Of a DNA stretch of 64,000 bases, positions 318 through 26,704 are shown piece by piece. Under the pieces are notes generated by a model. That model did no database searches. It was given only the letters and a program-made list of their open reading frames with translations, and was not told where the DNA came from. The stretch covers positions 124,001-188,000 of IMG/VR virus record IMGVR_UViG_3300028864_000014; one strand, given 5' to 3'. The first letter of the stretch is position 1; each line of letters starts with the position of its first letter. The translations under genes were made by a program, and so were the position numbers.

Positions 318-647
318 ATGACAGTATATAGTTTTGATGAATATTATGGCAAGAAATATCAAGTAGATAGATATTATGATAATATGATGAGAGTAGTTGA
401 TGATTATGTAAATACTAATGATGAATTTAGAAAAAACCACAAAGTTCAAAATTCACCTTATTTTGTTATAAAATCAGATAGTATACATAAAAGTTCACTT
501 AAACCAGGAGGATATAATATAAATTACACTTTGAAAAAAAATTATCAAAAGGGAACAATAAATATAACTGATGAAGAATATAATGATTTAGTTGAATATA
601 TGAAAGATACAGAATTATATAAATCTACAAAAAAATTCAATTTATAA
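318..647 (+). CDS. hypothetical protein with CTS-like N-terminus and KFNL C-terminal tag
   Basis: MTVYSFDEY...STKKFNL*. Confidence 0.8.
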   Translation: MTVYSFDEYYGKKYQVDRYYDNMMRVVDDYVNTNDEFRKNHKVQNSPYFVIKSDSIHKSSLKPGGYNINYTLKKNYQKGTINITDEEYNDLVEYMKDTELYKSTKKFNL

Positions 648-1447
648 TGAGCAAAAAAGTCAAAGATTGGAATTCATTTATTTTAGAACAACAGAGTATA
701 GAAAACTCTATATATTCAATATTTGATATTGATGATAATTTACTTATCATGAATACTCCTTTACACTTTCAACATTTTGAAAATGGTAAATGGATAAATA
801 AAGATATATCAATTCAAGATTTTTCTAAAATAAGACTTGAATATCCAGATAATTATATTGATAATAATGAATGGAAATCAGACACTAAATATACATTTTC
901 TGAATTTGGAGACAACGGTCCAAGATTAGATAATTCACTTGTTGATGATATTAAAAAATCAATAAAGAATAAAAATTTTGGTCCATCATGGGAGTCATTT
1001 TTAACAACTCTAAAAGAAGGTAGATTATTTGCTATCATTACCACAAGAGGACATGAACCTAATACTATACATTCATCAGTAAGATATATAATAGATAATG
1101 TATTAGACATAGATGATAAAAATATAATGATAACAAATATAGAAAAATATAATAAATTATTCAAATTTGAATCAACTGATAAAATAGAAAATTATTTAGA
1201 CTGCTGTTATTTTATTGGATTAATGTCTCAAGCATTCAAAGATGAGTTTTATTTTACTCCAACAATGAAAACAAGACATTTAGCTATACAAGATGCAACT
1301 AACAAATTTTCAAATTACGTTAAAGAAATTTCTCCTGGTACAATAGATTCATTCATTAGTAATGAGAAATCATTAGACTTTCCTGAATTTTATAGCATTT
1401 CTAATTCTGTCACCAATAAAACAGAACAAGTAAAAGTTAAAATATAA
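647..1447 (+). CDS. putative HAD-superfamily hydrolase with CTS-like leader
   Basis: FDIDDNL (DxD motif I), FAIITTRGHEP (motif II-like); N-terminus MSKKVKDWNSFILE. Confidence 0.45.
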   Translation: MSKKVKDWNSFILEQQSIENSIYSIFDIDDNLLIMNTPLHFQHFENGKWINKDISIQDFSKIRLEYPDNYIDNNEWKSDTKYTFSEFGDNGPRLDNSLVDDIKKSIKNKNFGPSWESFLTTLKEGRLFAIITTRGHEPNTIHSSVRYIIDNVLDIDDKNIMITNIEKYNKLFKFESTDKIENYLDCCYFIGLMSQAFKDEFYFTPTMKTRHLAIQDATNKFSNYVKEISPGTIDSFISNEKSLDFPEFYSISNSVTNKTEQVKVKI

Positions 1448-1470
1448 TAAATATCAAATATTTAATAAAT

Positions 1471-1515
1471 ATATCTTGAATAATTTTTTTATTCAAGATA
1501 TTTTTTTTATCTTTG
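1471..1515 (+). promoter_or_regulatory. terminator hairpin fused to a Bacteroidota-type -7 promoter element
   Basis: atatcttgaata/tattcaagatat stem plus T-run running into TATCTTTG at 1508-1515, upstream of ligA. Confidence 0.65.
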
Positions 1516-1541
1516 TACTTCATAAACAAAAAATATAAAAA

Positions 1542-3474: not shown

Positions 3475-6229
3475 ATGACAGCATTAGAAGTATATAATTT
3501 TTTAAAAAATTCAGGAAAATTTTCAGATTTAATTTTTGGAGAACCAAATTCTAACGTAAGATATTCTCCATTTGCAGAAATAAAGTATGTTATAAACAAA
3601 TCAGAATATATTATAGAAGTCACTAATGAATATCAATACTCTTTTTTTAGTTGTCATCCATTTACAGATATTAAAGGATTAGAATTTGTTATTCTTAATG
3701 ATTTTTGTGAAGAAAAAACAATTATATCTAATTTCAAAAGATTATTAAAAAAAATAATAAAATTGGATATTTACATCCAAAATAGAGAAATTGATAAAAT
3801 TGTGATAAAAGATATAATAAATAATCATATTAAAAAAACATATAATTTAAATGTTGATTTGACATACGGATATTTAAGTAAATTATTCAAAAATTACATG
3901 ACTATTAAATTTTCACCAAAAAATATCACGTCAAGAATAAAAAGAAAGCCATCATACCACCAAGTATCATATAATAAAAAATTATTTGATACTTCATTAG
4001 AACATTATTCGAAATATGATATTTGGGTATTTTTTAATAATAATAACTCTCATGTCGCATTAAATTTATATTATGACGGAGAATCAAAAAAATTATTATC
4101 AATTGCAAAAAATGAATCATATCAGCCTTTTAGCAATGATATAACTAAAATAATAAGAAAAGAAAAACTTATTAAACTTATGAATGATGACTGATATTGA
4201 GACAATAGAAATAATTAAAAAATACATATTAAAAAAGAAATTTGAAATTGAAATTGGTAGTGTTGATAAAAATTATATATCATTTTATTATAACTTAAAT
4301 GATTCAGATTATTGTATTAATATATTCATTGAAAAAAACAAAAATAATCAGTCAGTTATAAAATATTATTCAAATTGTAATATTTTTAATATAAATAGAT
4401 TGAGAACTTCTGTATCAAGCAAAAATTATTTACGTAGTATTTATGATAATTTGATTTATATTAAAACTGAGTTGAATAAAATATCAAGATATGAAAAAGA
4501 AAGATATGATAATAATAAAAAATATTGCACAGAGTTAGAAAGTCATTATAAAAAAATTCATGATAATGTTAATATTGAAGTTTTTTTTCCTAATGACGAT
4601 AATATTAATATTAAAATAACTGGTTATAATAATAACAAAATTACTATTTATAGCATAAATTATACTGACAATAAATATTACCTTAATAGTCTTGAAGAAA
4701 AATATTCACCAAATAAAACAATATGAAAGCACTACACATCACATCAGAATCTAATGGTTACGAAGAAGTAGAATTACTTGCAAACAGAGTATCAAGAACA
4801 AATGGACTTGCTGTAATTGAGATAAACGGAGAAATATTAATGACTGGAGGTTTTTTAATTCAAGATACGCCTGAAATAAGAATTATATTGGATAACACAT
4901 CAAAAGATAAGCAATTTGATTTAATAAAATCAATAAAAATGGATCCATTTGCTGCATTCTATTATGAAGAATAATTATGATATTTTCAGATAAAAAATAT
5001 TCACATTTAGAAGATGTTGAAGGTAATAAAATATATGATATTATTACTTACCCTTATCTATTCGGATTTGATGGGTCTTATGATGATATTGTATTAGAAT
5101 TAAAAATAAATTCTGATAATACAATGGATTTGAAGTTTGATAATAATACATTGTCAGGATTTAATAATACTTCAAATAAACAATTTTCTGTTTGTAAAAC
5201 AAAGCAAGATAGTATGCTTAAAATATTTAAAAAACAATTATTGAAGTACCCTTATCCAACTGATGAACTAACTTTAATATTTAGTAAATAATATAAACTT
5301 ATTGGTTTTCTTGTAGTATATAAGAAAAAATTAAATTTATGAATTATAATATAACGGTGTTTCTTGACGATAGTAGTATAATAACTATACCTGCTGAGTA
5401 TGAAAATGAATATACACTAAAACAAAACGTGACTGCAATAGGAAATAATGGTGTATGGGAAAGTACGGGAAGTGATTATATATTTACTCCTTCTCATAGA
5501 ATATTCAAAATTGATGTATGGAAAGACAAAAAATAAATTTCTAAAAATAAAATAAAATAAAATAAAATATGAAAATAAAAGAATACAAAATTCAAATGAC
5601 ATTATCAATTGAATCAGAAGAAGCGGATTATGAAAGAGTAGAACAATTTGCTCAAGAACTTGCAGAGAGTCTTATTCAAGATAATCCAGTATCATACGAT
5701 GATATTGATATCGTTGAAACTGTAGTTACCGAAGTTCAAGATCTTAATGATGATGAAGATTTCACAAATTTAGATAAAAATGGTGATGAAATTGAAGAAG
5801 AAGAATATTAATTAAAAAATAATTAAATAAATTATAAAAGTAAAACTTTATATATTATTAAAACTAAACAATAAACAAATTATTAAATAAAAAATTATGA
5901 ACATTACCGAACAATTATCAGAAATGGTTAATCCATCTACTGAAATCCAACAAAATTTTCTTGAAGAAGTTAAAAAAGTTAAAATCTTTGATCTTAATGA
6001 AACTGATAAATTAGCTTTGATTGATTTTCTTTGTGATAAAGCTGAACAAGATTTAGCTTTCGATTATCTTTATCATGTATTGGATAATGAAATTTCATAT
6101 CCTATTGATGATGAAAAAGTAAAAACACTTTTTGCTGACGAAAGAATGCAAAAAATGAAAGATTTAATGTTAGCTCAACTTAACGATGAAGATTCTGAAG
6201 ATTCAACTGACGAACCAGTAGAAGATTAA
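3475..6229 (+). other. run of 7 co-oriented hypothetical ORFs (3475-4194, 4184-4726, 4723-4974, 4977-5291, 5339-5536, 5569-5811, 5897-6229)
   Basis: Overlapping or abutting ORFs with A-rich initiation regions; no recognisable domains; the last two are highly acidic. Confidence 0.75.
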
Positions 6230-6246
6230 TTTTCAAATTAACTTTC

Positions 6247-6307
6247 TAATAAACCTATAATTTTACAATAAATCATATTAGTTTATTGTTAAATTATAGG
6301 TTTATTA
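6247..6307. repeat. 26-bp inverted repeat with 1 mismatch and a 9-nt loop
   Basis: taataaacctataattttacaataaa / tttattgttaaattataggtttatta. Confidence 0.85.
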
Positions 6308-6340
6308 TTAATATTATATTGTTTATTAAAAAATTTTCAG

Positions 6341-6348
6341 TATCTTTG
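6341..6348 (+). promoter_or_regulatory. Bacteroidota sigma-A -7 element
   Basis: TATCTTTG, 41 nt upstream of clpP. Confidence 0.65.
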
Positions 6349-6389
6349 TATCTAATCAATTAATCAAATAATAATTAAAATATTAAATT

Positions 6390-7145
6390 ATGAACAAAAA
6401 CGCATTTAGAAATTATGCTACTAAGCATTTAGGTATTAATGGAACATTGGTAGATGATGTGACAAAATATCAAGTCAAGAATTTTGGTTTATCTCCTCAT
6501 GTTTTAGAAGAAAGACAACTTAATGTAACCCAATTGTCCGTATTTGATAGACTTATGATGGATAGAATTCTATGGGTGTCTGGTGAAGTGGATGATACAA
6601 TGTCTGATATTATTCAAGCACAATTATTATATTTAGAGGATTCTGATCCTAAAAAAGATATTACAATGCAAATATCAACACCAGGAGGATCAGTTATTCA
6701 TGGGTTAGGTATAATTGATGTTATGGATTATATTAAGCCTGATGTAGCCACAGTTAATTTAGGAATGTGTGCTTCAATGGGTAGCGTTCTTCTATCATCT
6801 GGTGCAAAAGGCAAACGTTCATCTTTAATTAATTCTACTGTTATGTTACATCACGTTGCTGCAGGAAATAGTGGGAAAGTAGATGATACTCGTATTAGTC
6901 AAATGGAGACTGAAAAATATAATTTTTTACTATTCAAAATTCTGGCAAAAAATTCTGGAAAATCATTTGAAGAAATTCATGATTTCTGTCAAAGAGACAT
7001 GTGGCTAAATTCTGATGAAGCATTAAATTATGGTTTGATTGATTCTATTATCGGATTAACTGATAACAAATCAAATTCTATTACAACTATGATGGATGGT
7101 TTTGATGAATATTATATGAAATATGTATTTAAACAAGTAAAATAA
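6390..7145 (+). CDS. clpP: ATP-dependent Clp protease proteolytic subunit
   Basis: VFDRLMMDRIL, ISTPGGSV, GMCASMG (catalytic Ser), VMLHH, RDMWLNSDEALNYGLID; long N-terminal extension. Confidence 0.95.
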   Translation: MNKNAFRNYATKHLGINGTLVDDVTKYQVKNFGLSPHVLEERQLNVTQLSVFDRLMMDRILWVSGEVDDTMSDIIQAQLLYLEDSDPKKDITMQISTPGGSVIHGLGIIDVMDYIKPDVATVNLGMCASMGSVLLSSGAKGKRSSLINSTVMLHHVAAGNSGKVDDTRISQMETEKYNFLLFKILAKNSGKSFEEIHDFCQRDMWLNSDEALNYGLIDSIIGLTDNKSNSITTMMDGFDEYYMKYVFKQVK

Positions 7146-7146
7146 T

Positions 7147-7665
7147 ATGACTGGAAAATTAGATAATTATTTAGTTGAAAAATATCCTAAAATTTTCATA
7201 AATCGTTATGGTGATATGAAATCTACTGCAATGTGTTGGGGATTTGAACATGGAGATGGTTGGTTTTGGATATTAGATCAACTATGTTATTCTATTCAAA
7301 GTTATATTGATATGAGTAATGAATATTTATCTGATGATAAGAAAATTCCTCAATTAGTTGCATCACAAATAAAAGAGAAATTTGGAACTCTTAATTTTTA
7401 TTATGATGGAGGAAATTCTGAAATTGATGGAATGGTTAGATTTGCTGAAAATATGTCAGCAGGAGTATGTGAGTTTTGTGGATCAACTGAAAACATTGGA
7501 GGAACAAAAGGATGGATTTCAATTATATGCAAGTCATGTTATGATAATTCATCAGATAATGTCAAAAATAGAGTATGGACAGAACGCAAAAATAATCTTT
7601 CATATAGTAACACAATGAAAGAAGTTAGAAAAATAAAACTTGATAAATTAAATAGAGATTTATAA
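7147..7665 (+). CDS. conserved-looking phage protein with Cys pairs and RKxKL tag
   Basis: GFEHGDGWF, QIKEKFGTLNFY, CEFC...CKSC; ends VRKIKLDKLNRDL. Confidence 0.7.
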   Translation: MTGKLDNYLVEKYPKIFINRYGDMKSTAMCWGFEHGDGWFWILDQLCYSIQSYIDMSNEYLSDDKKIPQLVASQIKEKFGTLNFYYDGGNSEIDGMVRFAENMSAGVCEFCGSTENIGGTKGWISIICKSCYDNSSDNVKNRVWTERKNNLSYSNTMKEVRKIKLDKLNRDL

Positions 7666-7666
7666 T

Positions 7667-7701
7667 AAAAAATAGTTAGATTTATATCTAACTATTTTTT
7701 T
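7667..7701 (+). terminator. intrinsic terminator
   Basis: aaaaatagttaga/tctaactattttt stem plus T-run. Confidence 0.75.
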
Positions 7702-7703
7702 AT

Positions 7704-8671
7704 ATGAAATATTTTACTTATATTTGTATTTCAAGAATTGAAAATATGGAATACAAAGATTTAATAAAAACGATTAAAAAATACGAAGGTTCATATATAG
7801 AGTTTATAATGGATTTAAGTCATAATAATAAATGGTTTTTGATGACGATCAAAGAAGATTTATTTAAAATGAATTATAAAATAATAATTCTGAATAATAT
7901 ATTTAGTTTTTATGAATTACAAAAAATTACAAAAAATATAGAAGAAAAAACAATAATTTTTGTAAATAATAAAATAGATAATAATAATTTTAAAGATCCG
8001 TATAGATATTTCAATGAAAATTGTACTATAATATTTTTATGTGAATATTATAAGCATAAAAATAATAACTCAGTAAATAATATACTTAGTGACTTTAATA
8101 ACATAAGATTAACATATTCATCAGGTTTAATAGTTTCTGTAATATCAGATAAAGTAAAAATCGAAAAATCAAGAATTGAAAGAATTGATTGTGATAGTTA
8201 TTTCTATACATATACTGCAGTAAGAAAATTAAAATTAAAAATAATAAATTATAAAATTGAAAATAATATAATATGAAAGATGTAAAAGAATTTGTAGAAC
8301 AATTAGTCAATATTGATTTAATTGAAAATGAAGATTGTTATGGTCATTATCCATTTCAATTATTTGTAGAAACAAGTGATGGTAAATTCGAAATGAATTC
8401 ATTGGCATTGGGTGGTGATGTTGAATCATGCTACAGTAGAGTAAAGAATTATTTTAAAGATGGCGCAAAGAGAATGTTCATGTCATTAGATTTTCCTGGC
8501 TCTCAAGATATTGAAAATGATTTTGTGTGTATTTACTCAATTGTGGATGGTGATTTTGATGTATATGCAATTCCATATGACACAGAAACTGGAGAAGTAT
8601 ATGAAGAGATTCATAAAAGTGTTTTATTAGATAAAATTCTTGATGATTTCAAAACTCTTTGCTTGAAATAA
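7704..8671 (+). other. two hypothetical ORFs (7704-8276 with RKxKL tag; 8273-8671 acidic)
   Basis: ORF track; ATGA-type overlap. Confidence 0.7.
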
Positions 8672-8701
8672 AAATAATTATATAAACTGAAATTCCTGAA
8701 A

Positions 8702-9493
8702 TTATAAAATTTCAGGAATTTCTCTTTTTAGTACATTGTAAATGTGAAAATTTTTAATTCTCATCATTGCAATTGTTTTTAATTCTTTTTTCCAGTTTGT
8801 TGTTGATAAAACTTCAATGATTCTACTTTTCAATTTATCGTTGTGAATGAAAATCTTATATTCTCCTGCATATCTCTTATCATCTTTTGCTAATATCTTT
8901 CCTGCACATCCTGACCCCCAATAAACCATTCTCAAATCAAAATCATCAATCTCATTATATCCTTTGAATGTTTCTCTTACAATAGTCAAATCTTTCATCT
9001 TAAAATCAGGTTTAGTGTTTAATCCTTTTTCTGGCCTTTTATAAATATTAAAAGAACAATGTACATTTCTATCTGAATAAAATTGTAAGCCTAAATCTTC
9101 ACTATATATTAAATCAAATTCATATAAGCTTGATACATTATCAAATTGAGAAATAGGCAAAATAAAAGAAATATAATCACCCAGTTCTACAGATTTTTTA
9201 AAAAATTTATTAACTAAGTGCATTTTTGTTCCATATGGAGGATTTCCAATAATCAATCTACCTTTCTTATACGGTATGTTTAATTGTAAATAATCCTGTT
9301 TAATAATATTTTCATATTCTGGCTCAATATCATACGACGTACAATTTAATTGATTGGAAAAAGATCCATTACCAGCACTTGGCTCAATAATATCTGTAAT
9401 GTTCTTATTATCAACTAATTCAAAAGTTTTATCAATACAATATTTTGAAAGTTCTATCGGAGTATAGTATTTATCATTTTCTATTTTAGCCAT
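8702..9493 (-). CDS. N6-adenine (or N4-cytosine) DNA methyltransferase
   Basis: SAM-binding IEPSAGNGSF, catalytic GNPPYG, ISFILP. Confidence 0.88.
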   Translation of the reverse strand: MAKIENDKYYTPIELSKYCIDKTFELVDNKNITDIIEPSAGNGSFSNQLNCTSYDIEPEYENIIKQDYLQLNIPYKKGRLIIGNPPYGTKMHLVNKFFKKSVELGDYISFILPISQFDNVSSLYEFDLIYSEDLGLQFYSDRNVHCSFNIYKRPEKGLNTKPDFKMKDLTIVRETFKGYNEIDDFDLRMVYWGSGCAGKILAKDDKRYAGEYKIFIHNDKLKSRIIEVLSTTNWKKELKTIAMMRIKNFHIYNVLKREIPEIL

Positions 9494-9537
9494 TAAATAA
9501 TTTATTTTTTATTTTATATAAAATAATTGATGATAAG

Positions 9538-9569
9538 TTTGGTAAATACAAATAAACGAATTATCTTTG
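9538..9569 (+). promoter_or_regulatory. Bacteroidota sigma-A promoter
   Basis: TTTG (9538-9541), 20 nt, TATCTTTG (9562-9569). Confidence 0.8.
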
Positions 9570-9623
9570 TATCTCAATTAAAAACAAATAATAATTATTA
9601 TTAAAAACAAAAACAAAAAAAGT

Positions 9624-10586
9624 ATGAAAAAACAATTGATTTTAGTATGTGTGATTGTATTGGCAGTAATGTCATCTTGTATGAAACCTTATCAGGTACA
9701 AAAGTATCAGGAGATTAAACCAAATGAAACTGCTTATGTAATTCCATTAGAAAATGGAACTCAAGTTAATCAAAGTAAATTAAAATCCCAAACTTATCTC
9801 GAACAAAACAAAGTAGTTGCAAAACGTATTTACATTCCAACACAATGGCACAAGACAGGCAGGATGTCAAATAGTGGTGAATGGATTCCATCTGTTAGAG
9901 TTATTATTGTAGATCGTACTCCTGTTACACGTGAATGGAATGGTGCAGGTGGTGGATCAAATAAAGCATCAAATGACGCAATTGAAGTAGAATCTAAAGA
10001 ATCAATTGGATTTGCAGTTTGTATAACAGTAACAGCATCTATTCCAGAAGATTGGTCCACATTATTCTTATATTCATATAGTGGAAGATCTTTAGCTGAC
10101 TTGATGGACACTGATGTTCGAGGATATGTTCAAAAAAGTTTAACTACACAATTTGGTGATAGAAACTTAACAGGAGGACAGAACGATAGAAGTATTATTT
10201 TCTCTCAAATGTCAAAAGATGTAACAGAACACTTTGCATTATATGGTATCAAAATTATGAACATTGGTTCTGCTGGACAATTTACTTATTCTAATCCTAG
10301 TATTCAAGCAGCAATTAATGAAAAGTATTCATCTGAAATGAACATTAAAACTGCTGAGAATAAAGTAATTGCAGCTAATAAGTTTGCCAAAGCAAAAGCA
10401 TCAATTGAAGCACAGAGTCATCTTGATGCAGACATTGCTATAAAATTAGCATTTGCAGATGCAGTAAAAAATGGTAAGCTTCAAATCCCAAACAATCTTA
10501 CAATCGCTGGTGGAAATTTTTCAATGCTTGAATTATATGGATTGAAGAGTATGAATGCTATCACTTCAACAAAATCAAAACGATAA
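9624..10586 (+). CDS. SPFH/band-7 family lipoprotein
   Basis: Signal peptide with lipobox (VMSS-C), VESKESIGFAVCITV, C-terminal Ala-rich coiled coil. Confidence 0.7.
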   Translation: MKKQLILVCVIVLAVMSSCMKPYQVQKYQEIKPNETAYVIPLENGTQVNQSKLKSQTYLEQNKVVAKRIYIPTQWHKTGRMSNSGEWIPSVRVIIVDRTPVTREWNGAGGGSNKASNDAIEVESKESIGFAVCITVTASIPEDWSTLFLYSYSGRSLADLMDTDVRGYVQKSLTTQFGDRNLTGGQNDRSIIFSQMSKDVTEHFALYGIKIMNIGSAGQFTYSNPSIQAAINEKYSSEMNIKTAENKVIAANKFAKAKASIEAQSHLDADIAIKLAFADAVKNGKLQIPNNLTIAGGNFSMLELYGLKSMNAITSTKSKR

Positions 10587-10906
10587 TGAGAAACAAAATA
10601 ATCAAATCATTGTTAGTTGTTCTTCTATTAATTTCTATTGGATTATCATACAAATTAGTTGTTTATAAAACAACACAAGATTATTCTGCAGTAGCAGCTA
10701 ATCAACTCACTGATGATAATTCATATTATACATTAAAAACACAAAAAACAGCATTCAATTTTATTGATGTTATATATGGTGTTTCTATCCTTGGCTCTTT
10801 AAGCTTATTCTACTTAATTTGGAAACCAAAAAAAGAAGTTGAATTAGATAATGTCATGGAAGATGATTCAAATGAATTAAAAGAAGATGTAAAAGAAGAA
10901 GTCTAA
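10586..10906 (+). CDS. small membrane protein, likely SPFH partner
   Basis: Two hydrophobic segments; coupled to the upstream stop. Confidence 0.6.
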   Translation: MRNKIIKSLLVVLLLISIGLSYKLVVYKTTQDYSAVAANQLTDDNSYYTLKTQKTAFNFIDVIYGVSILGSLSLFYLIWKPKKEVELDNVMEDDSNELKEDVKEEV

Positions 10907-10929
10907 AAAATAATATTAAAATAAATTGA

Positions 10930-10967
10930 AAAATCCTTGCACACGCAAGGATTTTTTTTTATCTTTG
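10930..10967 (+). promoter_or_regulatory. terminator/promoter module
   Basis: aaaatccttgc/gcaaggatttt hairpin; CTTG, 20 nt, TATCTTTG (10960-10967). Confidence 0.7.
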
Positions 10968-11013
10968 TATTTAATATAATCATATAAAAACAATTTTTAA
11001 AAACTTATAAATT

Positions 11014-11187
11014 ATGGATTTTCAAACTGGTATATATGTAGGATTACTTATTATTTTTGTTATAGTTGTATTAATATCACAATTATATAAAATCTCTAAT
11101 GACGGAAAGAAAGATATTCTTGATGAAATGTTTAATAACGGTGACATTTCAACAGAATCATACAAAAAATATAAAAATAAATTATGA
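11014..11187 (+). CDS. 57-aa membrane protein with SHOCT-like tail (not in ORF track)
   Basis: MDFQTGIYVGLLIIFVIVVLISQLY...LDEMFNNGDISTESYKKYK. Confidence 0.55.
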   Translation: MDFQTGIYVGLLIIFVIVVLISQLYKISNDGKKDILDEMFNNGDISTESYKKYKNKL

Positions 11188-14878: not shown

Positions 14879-15321
14879 AGATTAAATTTTTCTGAATTTT
14901 TTATTGATAGATATTTTTCATATTGTTCTGTATATTCAGACATTATCATATCCATGTAAACTTTGGTATTTTTAATATAGAATAAAAAATCCTCGTCATT
15001 ATCGTCTTTTAAGTTCCAATTTGACCCTGCTTCTATTAATATTTTAATGATATTAATATTCTTTCTCATAGCAGCATAATGTAATGCTGTTCTTTCATAG
15101 GCATCTTGATAGTTAACATCAGCACCTTTTTCAATTAAATATTTAACTATATCTATTCTATTATTATCTGCAGCTAATATTAATGATGAATATCCATATT
15201 TATTTATATTATTCACATCAACTTTTTTATTTTCTATGAATTCTATTACTACATTCAAATCTCCTTCACGACAAGCATCAGATAATTTTTCATATGATTC
15301 AAACATTTTTATATATTTCAC
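14875..15321 (-). CDS. ankyrin-repeat protein, CTS-like leader plus KFNL tag
   Basis: GYSSLILAA...IVKYLIEKGADVN, ERTALHYAA...IIKILIEAGSN. Confidence 0.9.
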   Translation of the reverse strand: MKYIKMFESYEKLSDACREGDLNVVIEFIENKKVDVNNINKYGYSSLILAADNNRIDIVKYLIEKGADVNYQDAYERTALHYAAMRKNINIIKILIEAGSNWNLKDDNDEDFLFYIKNTKVYMDMIMSEYTEQYEKYLSIKNSEKFNL

Positions 15322-15935: not shown

Positions 15936-16201
15936 ATATTAAATTTATCTGTATTTTTTTTAATTTTAACAAATTGCTGTAATCTTTTTTTGCTACCTGA
16001 AAAATCTAACAGATAAGATTTATTTATCCTAAATCCAAGATTTGTTTCATATGAATCCCAATATACATTTATAATTTTATGAACAGTATAATTATATAGA
16101 TTGTGCATTTTTCCATCAAATGTTATAGGGCAGTCAAAAATAGCGTAATCTCCTACTTTTGGCTCATTTGGTTTATTTTCAAATGTTTTCAGATGTTTCA
16201 T
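15932..16201 (-). CDS. hypothetical protein, CTS-like leader plus KFNI tag
   Basis: MKHLKTFE|NK...NTDKFNI*. Confidence 0.8.
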   Translation of the reverse strand: MKHLKTFENKPNEPKVGDYAIFDCPITFDGKMHNLYNYTVHKIINVYWDSYETNLGFRINKSYLLDFSGSKKRLQQFVKIKKNTDKFNI

Positions 16202-16214: not shown

Positions 16215-16275
16215 TTTATATATAAATTATTTGAATATTATTTATTAAAAATGTGTTAATTTATTTTTATATATA
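16215..16275. promoter_or_regulatory. divergent pair of candidate late promoters
   Basis: Palindrome TTTATATATAAA at 16215-16226 (minus strand reads TATATAAATA, containing the T4 late consensus TATAAATA); TTATATATA at 16267-16275. Confidence 0.5.
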
Positions 16276-17015: not shown

Positions 17016-18407
17016 ATGAATAAAAATAAACTCGTTTTAAAATCTAAATATAATACAAATAGATATTATATTAATTTTTCAAAAACAAATGGAAAAATAA
17101 TATTGGGTCCAAATTCAATTTTAAATCCAACCAATTATACTCTAAATGAATCTAATAATGACTTGACTATGGAAAATAATAATTATGAACCAAAAGACAA
17201 TTCTTCATTAGTAAAAAACTTAAAAATGAGTACAAACTTATTTAATAATACTATAATAGAAAATAATAATCATATATATCCAAAAAATGCAATTTTTATA
17301 AGTGCATCAGAAACTACTACAACTACATTTACAACTCTTGTACCTACAACCACAACAACTACAACTCTTGTACCTACAACCACAACAACTACAACTCTTG
17401 TACCTACAACTACCACAACAACTCTTGTACCTACAACTACCACAACAACTCTTGTACCTACAACTACCACAACAACTCTTGTACCTACAACCACAACCAC
17501 TACAACTCTTGTACCTACAACCACAACAACTACAACTCTTGTACCTACAACCACAACAACTACAACTCTTGTACCTACAACTACCACAACAACTACTACT
17601 ATAGTTCCTGAAACAACAACCACAACATCAACAACCACAGTTATTATTTCGACTTTTTCTGAATCAATAGAAAATAGCATTTCAACTACAACATCAACAA
17701 CTAAAAAAGAATTAAAAGCAGAATTGAGTATGATTAATAATCATACACTAAAACTAATTATATCTGGTGGTTCTCCTAACTATAATTATTCATTTACATC
17801 AACAATCACAAGTGGAAGTTGTGTCGGCTGTTTTGTCACTAATCCGTCAGAAGGAATTATTTCTATTGATGGAGGCTCAACAATTAAAATATTTAACTAT
17901 GCAGAAATTTCTGGAATGAATTATGGCATATCATCTACTGTAACAGATAGTAATGGGAACACAGTAGAATCAAATATTATATCTCCATTAATATGCTTAG
18001 TACCAGAAACATTAATAACAATGTTTGATAATACCACAAAAAAATTAAAAGATATTATAATAGGAGATGAATTATTAACAATTGATAATAATAAATTAGT
18101 TATGACAAAAGTAATTGGAAAAAGCTTACATGTTGCAAATGAAACAATTAGTATAAATAATGAATTATTAGAGTCATCTTTATCACACAATCATTTAATA
18201 AGAAAAAATGGATTAATTGAAAAAGTTAATGGTTATAATTTAAAATTAGGTGATAAATTAATAGACATAAACAATAATGATGTAATTATTGAAAAAATAA
18301 AACTTAATAATTCGCCTCATGATGTAATTAATATATCTACTGAATTAGGTACATATATAGCAAATAACATTCTTACTCACAACAAATCAGAATGTCAACA
18401 AATATAA
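17016..18407 (+). CDS. Thr-rich repeat protein with C-terminal Hint (BIL-like) autoprocessing domain
   Basis: Hint 17994-18383: CLVPETLITM...KDIIIGDEL...SLSHNHLI...LKLGDKL...INISTELGTYIANNILTHN; 7-aa C-tail. Confidence 0.8.
   Translation: MNKNKLVLKSKYNTNRYYINFSKTNGKIILGPNSILNPTNYTLNESNNDLTMENNNYEPKDNSSLVKNLKMSTNLFNNTIIENNNHIYPKNAIFISASETTTTTFTTLVPTTTTTTTLVPTTTTTTTLVPTTTTTTLVPTTTTTTLVPTTTTTTLVPTTTTTTTLVPTTTTTTTLVPTTTTTTTLVPTTTTTTTTIVPETTTTTSTTTVIISTFSESIENSISTTTSTTKKELKAELSMINNHTLKLIISGGSPNYNYSFTSTITSGSCVGCFVTNPSEGIISIDGGSTIKIFNYAEISGMNYGISSTVTDSNGNTVESNIISPLICLVPETLITMFDNTTKKLKDIIIGDELLTIDNNKLVMTKVIGKSLHVANETISINNELLESSLSHNHLIRKNGLIEKVNGYNLKLGDKLIDINNNDVIIEKIKLNNSPHDVINISTELGTYIANNILTHNKSECQQI
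17334..17609 (+). repeat. coding tandem repeat, 9 x LVP-T(6-8) (27/30-bp units) plus IVP
   Basis: actcttgtacct at 17334, 17364, 17394, 17421, 17448, 17475, 17505, 17535, 17565. Confidence 0.95.
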
Positions 18408-18502
18408 TTAATAATTATTAACTATTAAATAAATTTCTGATGATATGTTAGTTACTTATTTAGTTATTTATTTTTATATATAATAAAAAATAATTTATAA
18501 AC

Positions 18503-19332
18503 ATGAATAATATCGAAAAACATGCAAAAGTTTGGATAAATAATAATTGGGTAAATTTTAAAATAAAAACAGGAGTACATACCAATATTGTAACATTTTT
18601 AGATAATAATAATTTATCTTTTATTAAAGAAAATCCTATTGATTTTAATAAAATTCCATTACCAATCCGTGGAAACGGAAAAAGTACAAATTTATTAGAT
18701 TATTTATCTAAGAATAAGAATAATATGAATTTAATACATTCTTTTTTATTTTATTTTATAAACAGTTTAGATTTTAGATATGAAAATGGAAATAAAATAA
18801 AAATAAAAGTAATAAATAATCCAGATTGGAAGAAATCTAATATTATAGTAGAACCTCAATATAGTAATACATTAACAGTAGATTCAACAATGATAACTGT
18901 AGATTCAACATTAATTGTGGCAAATTCAACAATAACAGCAGATTCTATAGTTTAATATTAGAATTATATAATATTTATATATACAAAAAAAAATAAAATA
19001 AAATGACAAATTTAATATCCCTAAGTGAAGGTGTTTGGATGCCAAAAGATAGAGTATTTCCAACAGAAGATCAGAAAAAAATATTATCAAGTACTAACAG
19101 TGGAGACACCGCAGCTAAAAATGATATCTTAGCTTTAATAAAATCTGGCAACACTGCAAATCAAGTTGATGTTGATAAAGCTAAAGAAGCTTACAATTTG
19201 AAGAAACCTGCATTAGTAAATCCAACTGATGTTTATAAATTTATCGCATCTGCAGTAACTATCGAAGGTGATACAGTAACTGGATTTATAAATTATTCAA
19301 TGAATGGTGTTATAAATAAAATAAATTTTTAA
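18503..19332 (+). other. two hypothetical ORFs in the structural block (18503-18955, 19003-19332)
   Basis: Each preceded by TTATATATA; the first ends in TVDST-type repeats. Confidence 0.7.
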
Positions 19333-19363
19333 CTTATTTCACACATAAAAATAACAATTATGA

Positions 19364-21794
<2,431 letters not shown>

Positions 21795-21829
21795 TAAAAA
21801 AGAGTAGATTAAAATCTACTCTTTTTTTA
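21795..21829. terminator. bidirectional terminator
   Basis: aaaaaagagtagatt/aatctactctttttt. Confidence 0.85.
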
Positions 21830-22405
21830 TAAATTAAATTTTTTAGAATCTCTATATAAAGGATAATATTTAGTATTAATTTCATCATATTCTTTCCAAG
21901 TGGTTTGAAAAATATATCCAAAGTTTTCTACATATTCATTATTTTTAGCCATATCAGCAAATAGTTTGTGATTATTTATACATCTCTTAATAAAAAATTC
22001 TCCTTTTCCTATAACAGAACTTATTAAGTCAAAATATCCGTCATCTGATGGCATAAAGGTTGAATATTTATTATCTAACCAAGTAGGTTTAAAATATAAA
22101 TAAAGTTCTTCTGTTAACTTATCATATTCCTTTCTAAAATTTATAATGGTATCGTATTCAAAATTTTTGAATACTCTTATTTTCAATTTTAATTCTTCTT
22201 CTTTATCTTTATTTTCAAATTCATCCTTAGTTTTAATTATTTTATTCCAATTAGCGACAGTTATAAATTTCCAAAATTCATCACTATAATTATTAACATT
22301 CGGTTTATTAGATCTAATAACATCACCATTATTATTCGAATATATAAGGTTACCATTATTATCATAATAATCAATTTTTTCAAAAATATTAAAATTTGTT
22401 ATCAT
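21827..22405 (-). CDS. hypothetical protein, CTS-like leader plus KFNL tag
   Basis: MITNFNIFE...DSKKFNL*; contains SDDGYFDLISSVIGKGE. Confidence 0.8.
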   Translation of the reverse strand: MITNFNIFEKIDYYDNNGNLIYSNNNGDVIRSNKPNVNNYSDEFWKFITVANWNKIIKTKDEFENKDKEEELKLKIRVFKNFEYDTIINFRKEYDKLTEELYLYFKPTWLDNKYSTFMPSDDGYFDLISSVIGKGEFFIKRCINNHKLFADMAKNNEYVENFGYIFQTTWKEYDEINTKYYPLYRDSKKFNL

Positions 22406-22407
22406 AT

Positions 22408-23565
22408 TTACATATTAAATTTATCAGAATCTACAATAAACATATATTTATTAAATTCTGTTTTTATTTGAGAATCTAATACAAAATTGGAGTTCAAATC
22501 TTTTAAAGCTTCAGCTATCAAATCTCCTTTTTCATCTTCTGTACTATCATCATATCCATTTTCCTTTATATATTCTTCTATATATCTTTTTTGAAATTCA
22601 TACTCATCTGATATATCATCTGAGTGATCACCTTTATCTTCAAATATTTCAAATAGCAGCAAAGTAAGATTATTTGAATCCTTAGAATTGTCCATCAGAT
22701 AATGTTGAATTTCTATACTATCTGGAATTTTAGACTCCACCCAATCATATTTACTATCAGAATCTTCATATTTTTTATAATTTTTTACAAGTTTATCAAT
22801 ATCAATAAAAGAGCTATAATATTCATAAAATTTTTTAGGAGTCATATTATCAATTAATTCTTCATAAGAATCTACACTTTTCTCTTCTTCCATTATTTCT
22901 ATGAAAGTTTTATCCTCATATCTTTTTGTAATAGTTTCTTCTAAAAACTCACCTTCTTCATTTTCATCTGTTATTATATCTTTTAATTGATCAGAATCTA
23001 AGTCATCTATCATATCAGAATCATATTCAATATCATCATTTCTTGCAATAATAGTATTATAATTAATTTCATCACCTTCTTCAACTACTATATTAAAATT
23101 ATCAGGAATTTCATATTCCTCAGTAGTATCATCTTCAGTAATCATAACCGTTTTTACTCCGTCTTCGTCTGAAATCGATACTATACCATCATATTCTGTT
23201 TTAATAATCATATTTTCATCATCATTATTATCATAATATAACTCAATTATTTTGTTTTCTTTTTCTCTTGTTAAATGATTATTAATATATTCTTTATATT
23301 CATATGCATCGAAATCTCCAATATTTTGATTATTCATACTATCTCTAATAATACTTTTTATATATTTATCATTATCAAAAACACCTGATATTATATTTGG
23401 ATTAGATTCTATTATATCTACGACATCACTTTGATCATAATCACTCAAATAATGTTCATCATAATAATCATATATATAGCTATCATCTAAAAAATCATGA
23501 ATCAAATCATATTTTGCACTATCTGAGCTTTCAAATAATTTAAATTTTTCAAACTTTGTTATCAT
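22408..23565 (-). CDS. very acidic protein with barrel-sandwich-hybrid-like insert, CTS-like leader plus KFNM tag
   Basis: MITKFEKFKLFE|SS; EEYEIPDNFNIVVEEGDEINYNTIIA; ends DSDKFNM*. Confidence 0.75.
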   Translation of the reverse strand: MITKFEKFKLFESSDSAKYDLIHDFLDDSYIYDYYDEHYLSDYDQSDVVDIIESNPNIISGVFDNDKYIKSIIRDSMNNQNIGDFDAYEYKEYINNHLTREKENKIIELYYDNNDDENMIIKTEYDGIVSISDEDGVKTVMITEDDTTEEYEIPDNFNIVVEEGDEINYNTIIARNDDIEYDSDMIDDLDSDQLKDIITDENEEGEFLEETITKRYEDKTFIEIMEEEKSVDSYEELIDNMTPKKFYEYYSSFIDIDKLVKNYKKYEDSDSKYDWVESKIPDSIEIQHYLMDNSKDSNNLTLLLFEIFEDKGDHSDDISDEYEFQKRYIEEYIKENGYDDSTEDEKGDLIAEALKDLNSNFVLDSQIKTEFNKYMFIVDSDKFNM

Positions 23566-23668: not shown

Positions 23669-24487
23669 TTATATATTATATTTGCTAGTATCATTTATAA
23701 CTTTCCAATCATTATAATATTTATCACTTAGCATATTTGAATATTTACCTAGTGTTTCATAAACCATATCAATATCAATTCTAGTGTATTTACTTAGTTT
23801 ATTGATATTTGAATTTCTATAATTTATAAATTTTGGATTTTTAGATTTATCTATATTTGGTGTATAATACTCATCAATTATATCAGTATCAAAATGTATT
23901 GAATATTTTAATTCTTTTGTACTTAAATTGTAATACTGATGAATTTTCAATATCCAAGTATTTTTATTATAAATATTTATTTTATTTAGTTCATATAATA
24001 TAGTATCAGTGTGAAAAAATTCCCATAATTCATAGCCTAAATTACTTGGAGATTTTAACAACTTATCAAAATCATTAGAATTCTTAGTTTTTATATTAGA
24101 ATCATTAAAGTATTTTGATATATTTTTATCATTATAAATATAAGAATCAACATTATATAATTCAGATGAATAAATAATTTCTTCAATTTCTTCAATTTCA
24201 GATTTATATTCATTTAATATTCTTTCATTCTCTTTTTCTTTATATTTCTTATTATCTATTTTTTTAAGATTTTTATTTATTTCTTTCTCTATTTCATTCA
24301 TCCTTTTTTTGTATTCAGGATCAAATTCTTCATATTTTTGCTTAGCTACATCAAGTCCTTTATTACCAATTAAATTTAAAAATTTTGTATATAATTCAAA
24401 ATTTTCTTTTTTTACTTTATCTAAAAACTTAACATTTTCTTTGTCTTGTAGTATATCAAAAACTTTAAATTCAAATATTTTTCTCAT
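23669..24487 (-). CDS. hypothetical protein, CTS-like leader plus KYNI tag
   Basis: MRKIFEFKVFD...DTSKYNI*. Confidence 0.8.
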   Translation of the reverse strand: MRKIFEFKVFDILQDKENVKFLDKVKKENFELYTKFLNLIGNKGLDVAKQKYEEFDPEYKKRMNEIEKEINKNLKKIDNKKYKEKENERILNEYKSEIEEIEEIIYSSELYNVDSYIYNDKNISKYFNDSNIKTKNSNDFDKLLKSPSNLGYELWEFFHTDTILYELNKINIYNKNTWILKIHQYYNLSTKELKYSIHFDTDIIDEYYTPNIDKSKNPKFINYRNSNINKLSKYTRIDIDMVYETLGKYSNMLSDKYYNDWKVINDTSKYNI

Positions 24488-24490: not shown

Positions 24491-24826
24491 TTATATATTA
24501 TATTTGTGTGTATCATTTGTAAATTCTGGAACATAAAAATAATCTAAAAAATCTGGTAAGTGATTATAATAACTATTCACATTAAACTCTATTTTATTTT
24601 TTTTATCATCAAACATAACGACTTTATCAATGCATTCAATTGGTAAATAATCTAAAATATTATATTTTTCTATTGCATCTTGTGGACTACCATAAAAACC
24701 GCAAACTTTATAACTTTTGTCTTTTTCAAAATTTATAACTTTACCTTTATAATTTTTTATGCACATCAAAATATCATCAACTCTTCTTAAATCTGGTGTA
24801 TTATATTTTTCAAATATAGTTATCAT
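24491..24826 (-). CDS. hypothetical protein, CTS-like leader plus KYNI tag
   Basis: MITIFEKY...DTHKYNI*. Confidence 0.8.
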   Translation of the reverse strand: MITIFEKYNTPDLRRVDDILMCIKNYKGKVINFEKDKSYKVCGFYGSPQDAIEKYNILDYLPIECIDKVVMFDDKKNKIEFNVNSYYNHLPDFLDYFYVPEFTNDTHKYNI

Positions 24827-25164
24827 ACATTGAATTTTTTTGTGTCTAATAATAATACATACGAATTTTTAGCATTTTCTAATCTATCATATGATGATAC
24901 CACATTAATTTCATTAATTGTTAATATATCAGTCCTTTTTGTGCTAAAAATAAAATTAGTGAAATCATATTCATAAATTTCAAGAACAACACGATCAAAC
25001 ACATCAATTAAAATAAATTTAGCAAGATAAAAATCCTTCTGATATTCAAATATAACATACTTATCATAATATTTTTTATAATCTAATATCTTTCTAGCCA
25101 TATCTTCATGAATTTTTTTTATTGAATCTTCAATGTTAATTTCAAATTTTTTAATATATTTCAT
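24823..25164 (-). CDS. hypothetical protein, CTS-like leader plus KFNV tag
   Basis: MKYIKKFE...DTKKFNV*. Confidence 0.8.
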   Translation of the reverse strand: MKYIKKFEINIEDSIKKIHEDMARKILDYKKYYDKYVIFEYQKDFYLAKFILIDVFDRVVLEIYEYDFTNFIFSTKRTDILTINEINVVSSYDRLENAKNSYVLLLDTKKFNV

Positions 25165-25244
25165 TTATATGATGAATTTTCAATATATATAAAAAAAAAT
25201 AATTACAAAACTTTTATTTTTTATTTTTATATAAAAAATAAAAA

Positions 25245-25490
25245 ATGCAAACATTAATATTCAATACATCGGAAAAAACAACAACTTTATATAACGGATT
25301 ATCAATTGATAAAGAACTTATAATATCAGAATATTCTTTTATTGATATTAGTACAGTTTCTGTAAGAGAAGGTTATTATGAATTTATGCAAAAAAAGGAA
25401 ATAAACACTGCAACAAGTGGTAGATATTCAGTTGTTCCTGTTGCTAGATTACCTATTTCTCAAACTAATATGATTATTATAAACGAATAA
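25245..25490 (+). CDS. hypothetical protein
   Basis: ORF followed by a convergent terminator (aaaacctgta/tacaggcttt). Confidence 0.65.
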   Translation: MQTLIFNTSEKTTTLYNGLSIDKELIISEYSFIDISTVSVREGYYEFMQKKEINTATSGRYSVVPVARLPISQTNMIIINE

Positions 25491-25522
25491 AACCTGTATT
25501 TTTTACAGGCTTTATTTAATAA

Positions 25523-26107
25523 TTAAACATTGAATTTATTTATATCAGTTTTTAAATCAAAATCTTTTTTATATTTTGGAAATTTATTGTTTATGTATAT
25601 TTCAATATCATTTATATAATCTTGTTTATGACTATTATATTCCTTAAATCCCATCATTAAATCATAAAAATTCTCACCTTCATTATTCTTAATATCAAGA
25701 TTTAATCCAGATTTTAAAAATTTTTCTAATATTGAAATAAATGTACCAGAATCATAAAAGCAAGACAAATATCTCATTATTGCAGTTTCACCATTTATAT
25801 CTTGCATATTTACATCTGCTTTAGCATTTAATAATTTATTTATAACTGTTGGGGTAGAAGCCATCATCAATGCAGTAATACCATTTCTATCTTTCTCATT
25901 AACATCTGCTTTACCTTCAATCAATGCATCAACAACAAATGGAAATTTTACAGCGTGCATCAATGCTGTTTTTTCATCTGAATCTTTCATATTAACATCT
26001 TCACCATCTTTTAATGCTTGTTTTACTGCATTAGTACTTCCTTTTCTTGCTGATGATATAAATGGTGGTTCTTTTACCAATCTTTCAAATAATCTTAAAT
26101 ATTTCAT
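25523..26107 (-). CDS. ankyrin-repeat protein (start moved from 26173 to 26107), CTS-like leader plus KFNV tag
   Basis: MKYLRLFE; KTALMHAV, GITALMMA, GETAIMRY repeats; ends DINKFNV*. Confidence 0.88.
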   Translation of the reverse strand: MKYLRLFERLVKEPPFISSARKGSTNAVKQALKDGEDVNMKDSDEKTALMHAVKFPFVVDALIEGKADVNEKDRNGITALMMASTPTVINKLLNAKADVNMQDINGETAIMRYLSCFYDSGTFISILEKFLKSGLNLDIKNNEGENFYDLMMGFKEYNSHKQDYINDIEIYINNKFPKYKKDFDLKTDINKFNV

Positions 26108-26173
26108 TTTAAATTTTAAATTTTTATTATAACTATATATAATTTTCATAAATATAAAATTATATATAATCAT

Positions 26174-26704
26174 ATGAAATATTTAAAACAATATGAAACA
26201 TACATAGAGATGTTTTTAGATGATGATGATCAATTATTTTTAATGCTAGAATATATTAACAATAATGATTCAGATAAGATAAAAAAATTATTTATTAAAG
26301 AATTCGATCCAAACACAAAGCAAGGAAGAGAACCAATAGTAATGAATCTTATAAATAAGATAGAAAACATAAATATAAATATATTAAATTTATTCATTGA
26401 ATTTGGACTAACTGTTGATATAATAACATCATTTTTATATAATAGTATAAATTGGTATAATAAAAAAACAGATAAACTAAATTTATTAGAATCATCAAGA
26501 ATATGCATAAAATCAGGAGCAAATTTATTTTATGAATATGGTAGAAATGAAAATATATTTGATGTAATAGATGATAATGATAGAATATCAGATAAATTTA
26601 GAAAGGAATTATATAAAATGATACAATATGAATTACCAAATGAATATAATAAATATATTACTGATAAAGAAATTAAAGACAATTCATCTAAATTTAACAT
26701 ATAA
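26174..26704 (+). CDS. degenerate ankyrin-like protein, CTS-like leader plus KFNI tag
   Basis: MKYLKQYE; FDPNTK, CIKSGANLF, GRNENIFD; ends NSSKFNI*. Confidence 0.6.
   Translation: MKYLKQYETYIEMFLDDDDQLFLMLEYINNNDSDKIKKLFIKEFDPNTKQGREPIVMNLINKIENININILNLFIEFGLTVDIITSFLYNSINWYNKKTDKLNLLESSRICIKSGANLFYEYGRNENIFDVIDDNDRISDKFRKELYKMIQYELPNEYNKYITDKEIKDNSSKFNI

Follow-up and report, generated by a model that had tools for sequence, protein, structure and literature searches.

An N-terminal leader resembling the T4 capsid-targeting sequence and an invariant C-terminal peptide occur together on many largely unrelated proteins of a phage from peat, fen, and bog metagenomes

The IMG/VR virus record IMGVR_UViG_3300028864_000014 is a 235,318-bp contig, with near-identical contigs from peat, fen, and bog metagenomes, of which a stretch of 64,000 nucleotides (positions 124,001 to 188,000; hereafter the window) was analysed here. 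Twelve open reading frames (ORFs) of the window end in the tail K-[FY]-N-[LIVM]-stop, and eleven of these also begin with a short leader resembling the sequence that targets internal proteins to the phage T4 capsid. The tail is a real protein-level signal. Moreover, codon comparisons between relatives indicate that both tags are selected as peptides and are modular, being placed on unrelated cores. We tentatively propose that the tagged proteins are carried in the virion as cargo. The twelve genes are given below (aa, amino acids), TATATATAA denoting a promoter-like motif that is taken up later.

318 to 647, plus strand: tailed ORF, 109 aa, with a weak leader (MTVYSFDEYY) and the end STKKFNL; it has its own TATATATAA motif at 286-294.
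14022 to 14450, minus strand: double-tagged, 142 aa, of the alpha/beta "MKKY" family (MKKYDQFINE...TTKKFNL); last gene before a terminator.
14447 to 14878, minus strand: double-tagged, 143 aa, MKKY family (MKSFDQYINE...DANKFNI).
14875 to 15321, minus strand: double-tagged ankyrin protein, 148 aa, with a corrected GTG start (MKYIKMFE...NSEKFNL).
15932 to 16201, minus strand: double-tagged, 89 aa, first in its operon (MKHLKTFEN...NTDKFNI), behind TATATATAA at 16216-16224.
21827 to 22405, minus strand: double-tagged DUF4240 protein, 192 aa (MITNFNIFE...DSKKFNL); last gene before a terminator.
22408 to 23565, minus strand: double-tagged, very acidic, 385 aa (MITKFEKFKLFE...DSDKFNM; isoelectric point (pI) 4.1, net charge about -71).
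23669 to 24487, minus strand: double-tagged, 272 aa (MRKIFEFKVFD...DTSKYNI).
24491 to 24826, minus strand: double-tagged, 111 aa (MITIFEKY...DTHKYNI).
24823 to 25164, minus strand: double-tagged, 113 aa, first in its operon (MKYIKKFE...DTKKFNV), behind TATATATAT at 25183-25191.
25523 to 26107, minus strand: double-tagged ankyrin protein, 194 aa (MKYLRLFE...DINKFNV), followed by a terminator at 25486-25516.
26174 to 26704, plus strand: double-tagged, 176 aa (MKYLKQYE...NSSKFNI), with weak ankyrin-like similarity, followed by a terminator at 26703-26732.

The twelve C-termini reported in an earlier note on this DNA matched the tail pattern exactly on re-reading (12/12). Six-frame translation of the window yielded 33 matches to K[FY]N[LIVM], 13 of them directly 5' of a stop codon; twelve of the latter are the ORFs above, and the thirteenth, at 26908-26922 on the minus strand (DREKFNI-stop), lies out of frame within the DUF2201 gene in an open frame of only 22 codons and was rejected as a chance match. 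Against the 12 tails observed among 142 gene calls, composition predicts 0.04-0.06 (binomial P~9e-27), ruling out a chance origin; likewise, the motif stands at the extreme C-terminus in 12 of its 17 occurrences inside predicted proteins. The control set comprised 208 loci (1.53 Mb) around the T4-like capsid genes of other phages, which were among the matches listed by two back-translated capsid-gene motif scans; there, an [FY]N[LIVM] end was found in 1 of 2631 ORFs. When 34 distinct tailed proteins, taken from the window and from three relatives, were pooled, the motif lengthened to Y(-12) x phi phi [KN] [DN](-7) [TSA](-6) x K [FY] N phi-COOH (phi, hydrophobic), with Glu-rich positions from -10 to -17 and Phe/Tyr at -3. 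All tails thus present phi-x-phi ([FY]-N-[ILVM]-COOH) at the free C-terminus. A literature search found no description of this tail, as the earlier note had remarked, and a profile built from 25 tails had no matching chain among PDB sequences.

The leader spans some 8-10 residues and takes the forms MKKYxQFINE, MKYIKxFE, and MITxFxxFE. Its likeness to the T4 capsid-targeting sequence, to which the earlier note had drawn attention, is borne out by MKKYDQFINE here and MKKYKEFINE in a relative, set beside T4 MKTYQEFIAE; these two and MKSFDQYINE share 5-7 of 10 residues with the T4 leader, and the remaining leader classes retain M-K-x-phi-x-x-[FY]-E. Within the first 13 residues, [LI]-x-E is found in 7/12 window leaders, and nearly all have [FY]-E or INE. 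The same note had assigned a T4-like leader to all twelve proteins, which stands for eleven, two of them after start correction, and fails for ORF 318, a weak match. The corrected starts are GTG 15321 for the 14875 gene, giving MKYIKMFE in agreement with the orthologues, and Met23 (coordinate 26107) for the 25523 gene, giving MKYLRLFE, where its orthologue also begins. With a leader pattern picked after seeing the data, leader and tail co-occur strongly (leader in 11/12 tailed versus 12/130 other proteins; Fisher P=2e-9), and a leave-one-out position-specific scoring matrix of the leader placed 10/12 tailed proteins within the top 17 of 142. A tail without a leader is essentially absent. The leader is retained where the start codon is GTG or TTG, the latter being the case for the 15932 orthologue in the relative L017. 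In the homologous MKKY family, some members begin with MKYIKKFE, MKHIKTFEN, or MITKFKIFEN instead; since members of one family differ in class, the leader classes would be interchangeable versions of one signal. The DNA pattern of the class-A leader, searched for in IMG/VR, matched within the narrow clade of the window phage only.

Proteins with a leader and no tail are mostly recognisable enzymes (NT5C nucleotidase, GNAT acetyltransferase, HD hydrolase, AAA ATPases, and DUF2201 metallopeptidase), and a relative encodes a rhodanese with the leader and without the tail. The window holds the following.

15318 to 15935, minus strand: leader-only NT5C-type nucleotidase, 205 aa (MKHLKMFETF), without C-tail, within a tagged operon.
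26733 to 31255, minus strand: trio with leader-like N-termini and without C-tail, composed of the next three genes.
26733 to 28241, minus strand: DUF2201 metallopeptidase/VWA protein (MIKKFNAFNF), a product called as 497, 502, or 508 aa in different contigs.
28263 to 29798, minus strand: AAA ATPase (MIKKYDSY).
29819 to 31255, minus strand: AAA ATPase (MKTLKNYDHF).
31316 to 31972, minus strand: leader-like only, 218 aa (MIKKFSNFKLLKE), with no Pfam match.
32296 to 32907, plus strand: leader-like only, 203 aa (MIKKIGKFNTE).
51569 to 52351, plus strand: leader-like only, HD-domain protein, 260 aa (MIKKFDKFND); a neighbouring gene has an upstream TATATATAA at 51033.

The count of twelve in the earlier note is too low for the genome. 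By exact-protein look-ups we walked outward from the window into further loci (100% and 99.99% identical, in their overlaps, to each other and to the window), so that about 140 kb of the genome was read. This sequence contains 34 distinct tailed ORFs, 32 of them with a leader, which fall into 18 core groups unrelated by BLAST; the largest group consists of 12 leucine-rich-repeat (LRR) proteins, and two members of the 34 are ankyrin proteins. The walk added a tagged trio at L245:7375-8314, a scattered group in L249, and a tandem array in L250. All 12 LRR paralogues are double-tagged, most of them standing in tandem at L250:10001-15792 and the rest at L249:11873-20067; one member ends in KFSI rather than KFNI, and in the row among them stands a GNAT acetyltransferase that bears a leader but no tail. 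Beyond this genome, a profile of the MKKY family run against 1.84 billion cluster representatives gave 55 matches, nearly all of 115-150 aa, nearly all starting with MK.[YF]..F[IL]NE or MK[YH]IK.FE and ending in K[YF]N[LI], mostly KYNL. By this search, some 50 sequence clusters beyond those of the genome end mostly in KYNL; in a more distant relative of 29% G+C, the tails read QYNL and SYNL. A mixed-core "double-tag detector" profile run against 5.8 billion proteins returned only orthologues of its input sequences. Judged from these sequence matches, the double tag is conserved across a wide clade.

In relatives at ~83% and 65% protein identity, every orthologue has both tags. Between orthologue pairs (55-85% identity), K-[FY]-N never changes, the last residue shifts among I, L, V, and M, and the last eight codons frequently differ at synonymous sites (TTT/TTC, AAT/AAC, GAT/GAC, GTA/GTG, CTA/TTA). 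Over 50 distinct tails drawn from the window, L004, L017, L245, L249, and L250, the Asn codon is AAT in 29 and AAC in 21, the Phe codon is TTT in 40 and TTC in 6, and all three stop codons are used. The one clear bias at the DNA level, ATA for the final Ile, is explained by ATGA overlap with the next gene, for which ATA is needed. Conservation at the DNA level only, an outcome that the earlier note had named as fatal to its proposal, is thus not what was found: synonymous codons vary and the peptide is kept. That note had also placed four tagged genes last before terminators, and a strong hairpin with a U-run indeed follows 14022, 21827, 25523, and 26704, the first two being as follows.

13972 to 14013, minus strand: terminator hairpin after 14022 (-24.5 kcal/mol, z=-8.3), then UUU.
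21796 to 21827, minus strand: terminator hairpin after 21827 (-15.3 kcal/mol, z=-4.6), then a U-run.

Because four tagged genes end at terminators and, in a relative, an untagged gene sits within a tagged operon, the tail is not simply the initiation region of the next gene. A signal in DNA or RNA, serving initiation or coupling, acting like a promoter, or offering a site at which gene cassettes recombine and shuffle, could be read from the 7/12 tails that abut or overlap the ATG of the next gene (often another leader), from the resemblance of AATATATAA to the TATATATAA motif, and from the ATA-biased last codon, as ATGA overlap requires. Yet four tails precede terminators and another precedes a 100-nt gap, AAT/AAC, TTT/TTC, and GAT/GAC interchange freely, the last residue changes through the first codon base, stop codons vary, and the peptide is kept in distant relatives whose DNA differs. 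The codon analysis and the terminators together largely refute conservation at the DNA level, which we regard as having only a slight chance of explaining the tags. As a separate observation, AAC encodes the tail Asn (-2) in 21/50 cases versus 11% genome-wide, an excess that could mean that accurate decoding is selected for or that the promoter-like AATATATAA is shunned.

The claim that the cores are unrelated holds for the most part (two ankyrin proteins, a DUF4240 protein, and an acidic protein are among them, and profiles share the tail alone), with the reservation that some are paralogues: 14022 and 14447 are one such pair, and the two ankyrin proteins another. PHROGs and Pfam searches of the tagged proteins recognised only ankyrin, DUF4240, and LRR. 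In the window, Pfam placed ankyrin repeats in two tagged proteins and DUF4240 in one, with domain limits that exclude both ends; in the 192-aa 21827 protein, the DUF4240 domain covers residues 42-169 only, for which reason both of its ends are additions. In hhalign comparisons of the MKKY family with the 24823, DUF4240, and ankyrin families (probability <4%), the C-tail alone was aligned, save for one spurious internal stretch between the MKKY and ankyrin families; as the profile comparisons align tails alone, the cores are unrelated. AlphaFold2 models were obtained for an ankyrin protein (pLDDT, predicted local distance difference test, of 90) and for an MKKY-family member (56 sequences; pLDDT 87). 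Both models show disorder over the first 6-10 residues, a long C-terminal helix that takes in the upstream half of the tail motif, and a low-confidence free end made up of the final 2-3 residues. The 14447 model has disordered residues 1-10, an alpha/beta core, a helix at 117-140, and a free terminal FNI; Foldseek comparison of the MKKY-family model with the PDB gave no significant match. Both termini are thus predicted to lie outside the folded cores, with the tail end exposed. The acidic protein at 22408-23565 is a candidate DNA mimic. A protein-atlas cluster named "IpIV internal head protein" was returned for two unrelated tagged proteins (scores 0.57 and 0.65), which we treat as a lead only.

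In T4, internal proteins are brought into the scaffolding core by the leader MKTYQEFIAE, which gp21 then cuts off, and ~1000 internal-protein copies stay in the head and are injected (PMC8442874, PMC7411985, PMC3012670). The T4 proteins Ip1-3 share the leader only, and each is a stoichiometric inhibitor of a different GmrSD nuclease (PMC12373910). According to the T4 record, IpI, IpII, and IpIII start with MKTFKEF or MKTYQEFIAE and end in unrelated sequences; a tail-like end was found in none of gp20, gp67, gp68, gp21, gp22, gp23, gp24, and Hoc. The two phages are alike in that (i) unrelated, non-essential-looking proteins (IpI, IpII, IpIII, and Alt in T4) have a common leader of ~10 residues, (ii) a Glu follows the leader aromatic, (iii) the genes lie in plastic regions, and (iv) T4-type virion genes are present. 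Moreover, T4 Ip1-3 are inhibitors of defence nucleases, and the largest core groups here are binder scaffolds. However, the T4 internal proteins are highly basic, have no common C-terminus, and number three in T4 and ~10 as described across its relatives, whereas this phage has at least 34 mostly acidic proteins (median pI 5.4 in the window set, with 1/12 clearly basic at pI 9.5) bearing an extra invariant C-tail; many of its leaders lack [LI]-x-E, and their packaging and cleavage are putative. By comparison of sequences, the leader is a signal of a known kind and the tail an addition to the T4 scheme. Of the two-address system put forward in the earlier note, the pair of tags is borne out, and packaging, ejection, docking, and degradation all stay candidate roles of the C-tag.

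Terminal addresses are also familiar from other systems. A C-terminal segment has been proposed or shown to carry the HK97 protease and the P22 scaffold into the procapsid. For SPN3US gp245, a C-terminal propeptide has been proposed or shown to carry the protein into the procapsid (PMC7411985). Such C-termini are longer regions on one assembly protein, unlike a tetrapeptide on dozens of cargos, and we detected no sequence similarity between the KFN-tail and the HK97, SPN3US, or P22 C-terminal targeting regions. The cargo peptides of encapsulins and microcompartments are short, often C-terminal, and transferable, and they dock on the inner face of the shell (HK97-fold or other). Encapsulin peptides resemble the KFN-tail in being short terminal peptides common to unrelated cargo; they differ from it in their motifs (e.g., GSL-rich) and organisms, and shell binding by the KFN-tail is hypothetical. 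Class II PDZ ligands, substrates of tail-specific proteases, and ClpX signals have in common with the KFN-tail a free phi-x-phi C-terminus after basic residues, but the invariant Lys, Phe/Tyr, and Asn of the tail are atypical of degrons.

We propose, with a confidence a little short of even, that the tagged ORFs of this uncultured, T4-like jumbo phage encode a large family of internal or ejection-type virion cargo whose tail is an exposed docking peptide. This interpretation stems from the consideration that late-made ankyrin, LRR, and acidic binders would benefit a lytic phage chiefly if it could bring them into the next cell. Each protein would be built of three modules. A flexible leader of ~8-10 residues, equivalent to the T4 capsid-targeting sequence, would insert the protein into the scaffolding core of the prohead, after which the prohead protease would remove it after a Glu. 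The second module would be an arbitrary folded core, with LRR and ankyrin scaffolds as the largest groups; small beta-rich domains, DUF4240, and an acidic protein that may mimic DNA are others. The third would be a C-terminal helix of ~12-16 residues ending in exposed K-[FY]-N-[ILVM]-COOH, i.e., a short linear docking motif that is probably read through its carboxyl end, aromatic residue, and Asn by one conserved phage component. Acting inside the head or at its exit, the tail may hold or place the binders, raise their copy number, or order their ejection. With the leader cut off, the mature proteins would have no shared address but the tail, and these, being mostly acidic, could not be held on the DNA through their charge, unlike the basic internal proteins of T4. 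The presence of both tags on binders and of the leader only on enzymes would fit a tail that raises or fixes the copy number of stoichiometric inhibitors. Packaging and cleavage of the proteins, like the binding partner and function of the tail, are what we infer from these patterns. In its most specific form, the proposal is that the tail is a second cargo address outlasting leader removal, by which more than 30 binders dock on one component of the head, portal, or a carrier and which sets their copy number, position, or order of ejection; this we hold to be a possibility with rather more against it than for it.

Several observations weigh against virion cargo of this kind. Only 7/12 leaders have the canonical T4 [LI]-x-E site, and the commonest, MKYIKxFE, lacks it, having Ile at P5 rather than P3. 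AAA ATPases and a VWA metallopeptidase, proteins that one would not usually expect as head cargo, also have leader-like N-termini, and the tagged proteins are mostly acidic, unlike the highly basic T4 IPI-III. Tagged clusters adjoin tail-fibre and gp10-like genes rather than head genes, as might be expected of some other virion address. No candidate tail receptor emerged from the PDB sequence and fold searches, no cultured relative was found among 50,697 phage records, and no portal, protease, scaffold, or capsid genes were found in the ~140 kb read; two capsid-gene DNA-motif scans had only other T4-like phages among the matches listed. As the head module was not found, a gp21-type protease in this genome is assumed.

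The main rival is, accordingly, a virion address other than the head, whereby the tags would direct proteins to a late assembly complex or, most obviously, to the baseplate or the very large tail-fibre apparatus, with the tail docking on a protein of the fibre or baseplate. Most tagged clusters, the lone ORF 318 excepted, lie beside fibre or gp10-like genes; the trio at L245:7375-8314 and the arrays of L249 and L250 have at least 10 fibre-like and at least four gp10_N-like genes around them, and conserved N- and C-termini are likewise a feature of the fibre proteins in this genome. However, the closest known match to the leader is the T4 head-targeting sequence, and neither tag occurs on any fibre or baseplate protein. 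Tagged genes and fibre genes alike are hypervariable, probably late accessories, such that their adjacency may reflect a shared plastic region; in T4, too, ipI lies near the tail-fibre chaperone genes 57A/57B, as the gene order read for T4 shows. On balance, we consider an address of this sort unlikely, though deserving of more weight than any other alternative. Somewhat less credit is due to a C-degron or processing signal recognised either by a tail-specific protease of the PDZ type or by a Clp unfoldase acting with the phage ClpP, so that unpackaged copies, or the proteins once delivered, would be cleared at a set time. Class II PDZ ligands have the form phi-x-phi-COOH, which F-N-[ILVM]-COOH fits, and the ClpX signal of MuA is basic-plus-apolar (RRKKAI), which K-K-x-x-phi loosely resembles; further, the window encodes a genuine ClpP (183 bits), and the tail end is exposed in the models. 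Nevertheless, known C-degrons are variable and apolar-ended, whereas Lys, the aromatic residue, and Asn are invariant here in ~80 distinct proteins. The tails have no ssrA-like LAA end, no ClpX-like unfoldase was identified beside the phage ClpP, and ~40 window proteins scanned with Pfam included no PDZ or S41 protein. The ClpP gene is also without the late-type motif, and deliberate destruction of more than 30 late-made binders would make little sense.

The shared ends could instead be structural elements (a cap or stabiliser) or remnants of one ancient family with diverged or replaced middles, and not addresses at all. Paralogue families do exist (12 LRR proteins, four small "VGDY" proteins, two ankyrin proteins, and the MKKY family), and a well-modelled helix that may pack on the core takes in the tail motif's upstream half. 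Still, LRR, ankyrin, DUF4240, and alpha/beta cores cannot share one ancestor, profile comparison shows the tail as the one common element, and the leader and last residues are modelled as free rather than packed. Leader class is swapped within one homologous family, and a cell-type Pfam domain, DUF4240, bears both ends as add-ons beyond its boundaries. A structural or ancestral origin is accordingly improbable in our estimation. Lastly, the tail might be an export signal for a host secretion system (e.g., a type IV-like C-terminal signal) delivering eukaryote-like ankyrin and LRR effectors out of the infected cell; intracellular bacteria typically secrete effectors of these two kinds. Signals of the Dot/Icm type sit at the C-terminus and combine a run of acidic residues with an important hydrophobic position close to -3, to which the Glu-rich segment and the Phe/Tyr of the tail correspond. 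Secretion signals are not known to be sequence-invariant as this tail is, though, the tailed proteins also have a head leader of the T4 type, and no secretion system is encoded or implied anywhere in the sequence read; export is therefore an explanation to which we attach hardly any likelihood.

With regard to genomic context, the window has 24% G+C and ~142 densely packed genes (93% coding), with many ATGA stop/start overlaps and no visible Shine-Dalgarno sequences. It encodes a NAD-dependent ligase, ClpP, five tRNA-Leu genes, two AAA ATPases, and the DUF2201/VWA protein. The DUF2201 and gp10-like proteins had distant matches only. Tagged clusters in the window flank a fibre island at 17016-21794, which includes the following gene.

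19364 to 21169, plus strand: gp10-like baseplate-wedge/tail-fibre connector, 601 aa.

Its N-terminus is 67% identical over 36 aa to the gp10-type connector of T4-like cyanophages, and three paralogues of the protein gave weak matches to PF07880 (T4_gp9_10_N); on the basis of this N-terminus and these paralogues, the phage is T4-like in a broad sense. The promoter-like motif occurs at these positions.

16216 to 16224, minus strand: TATATATAA, example copy.
286-294, 16983, 18475, 25183-25191, 26134, 26161, 31277-31285, 32223, 50225, and 51033: further TATATATAA copies.

Often forming the palindrome TTATATATAA, TATATATAA lies outside corrected coding sequence in nearly all copies, 13-84 nt upstream of operon starts, and precedes tagged operons, fibre- or baseplate-like genes, and some leader-only genes. 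It resembles the T4 late promoter, TATAAATA. The motif is thus plausibly a late promoter, from which tagged operons would be expressed late.

Other features of the genome were noted in passing. The ClpP homologue (6390-7145; PF00574, 183 bits) has an N-terminal extension of ~48 aa and lies in an early-looking plus-strand block without TATATATAA, and five tandem tRNA-Leu genes at 13519-13971 have the anticodons taa (twice), aag, caa, and tag. A second motif near the C-terminus, [IL]RKxKLxK[LI], is found 2-8 residues before the stop in 37/142 ORFs, located at 3475-13252 and 37694-57503 (e.g., 43768-43953, 43950-44183, and 55619-55858). These ORFs are mostly small, plus-strand, and early-looking, and none has the KFN-tail; the motif sits where the initiation region of the next overlapping gene falls and may be a feature of the RNA. 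Beyond the right end of the window is a very large tail-fibre block (L245:1-7306, L246:1280-9986, L248:3290-9961, and L250:15883-20579), comprising at least 10 fibre-like genes with the N-terminus MINIQLASEEWV and the C-terminus KLIYDK..IVDANA, as well as at least four gp10_N-like genes; IEYQFN is the end of small ORFs that follow the fibre genes. A further tandem series, of at least 14 paralogues (116-168 aa), lies in L247:3368-9620 and in L248/L249; its members share the N-terminal block M.KEELS.WF..KFNSCYPV and have neither tag.

Ultimately, the T4 internal proteins, which are recognised by their N-leader alone, are the model for injected anti-defence proteins and for the loading of foreign proteins into a phage head. 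In the phage clade described here, a similar leader is accompanied by an invariant C-peptide on dozens of unrelated proteins, including tandem arrays of LRR and ankyrin proteins. If the tail is a packaging, retention, or ejection signal, it would represent a step in head-cargo handling that T4 does not show. Injected effectors could then be sought in uncultured phages by a simple sequence rule, and the engineering of protein delivery would gain a second handle, a portable tag within a two-part code for loading and delivery. Mechanism aside, the tag pair marks out 34 or more proteins of a single genome as a candidate payload.

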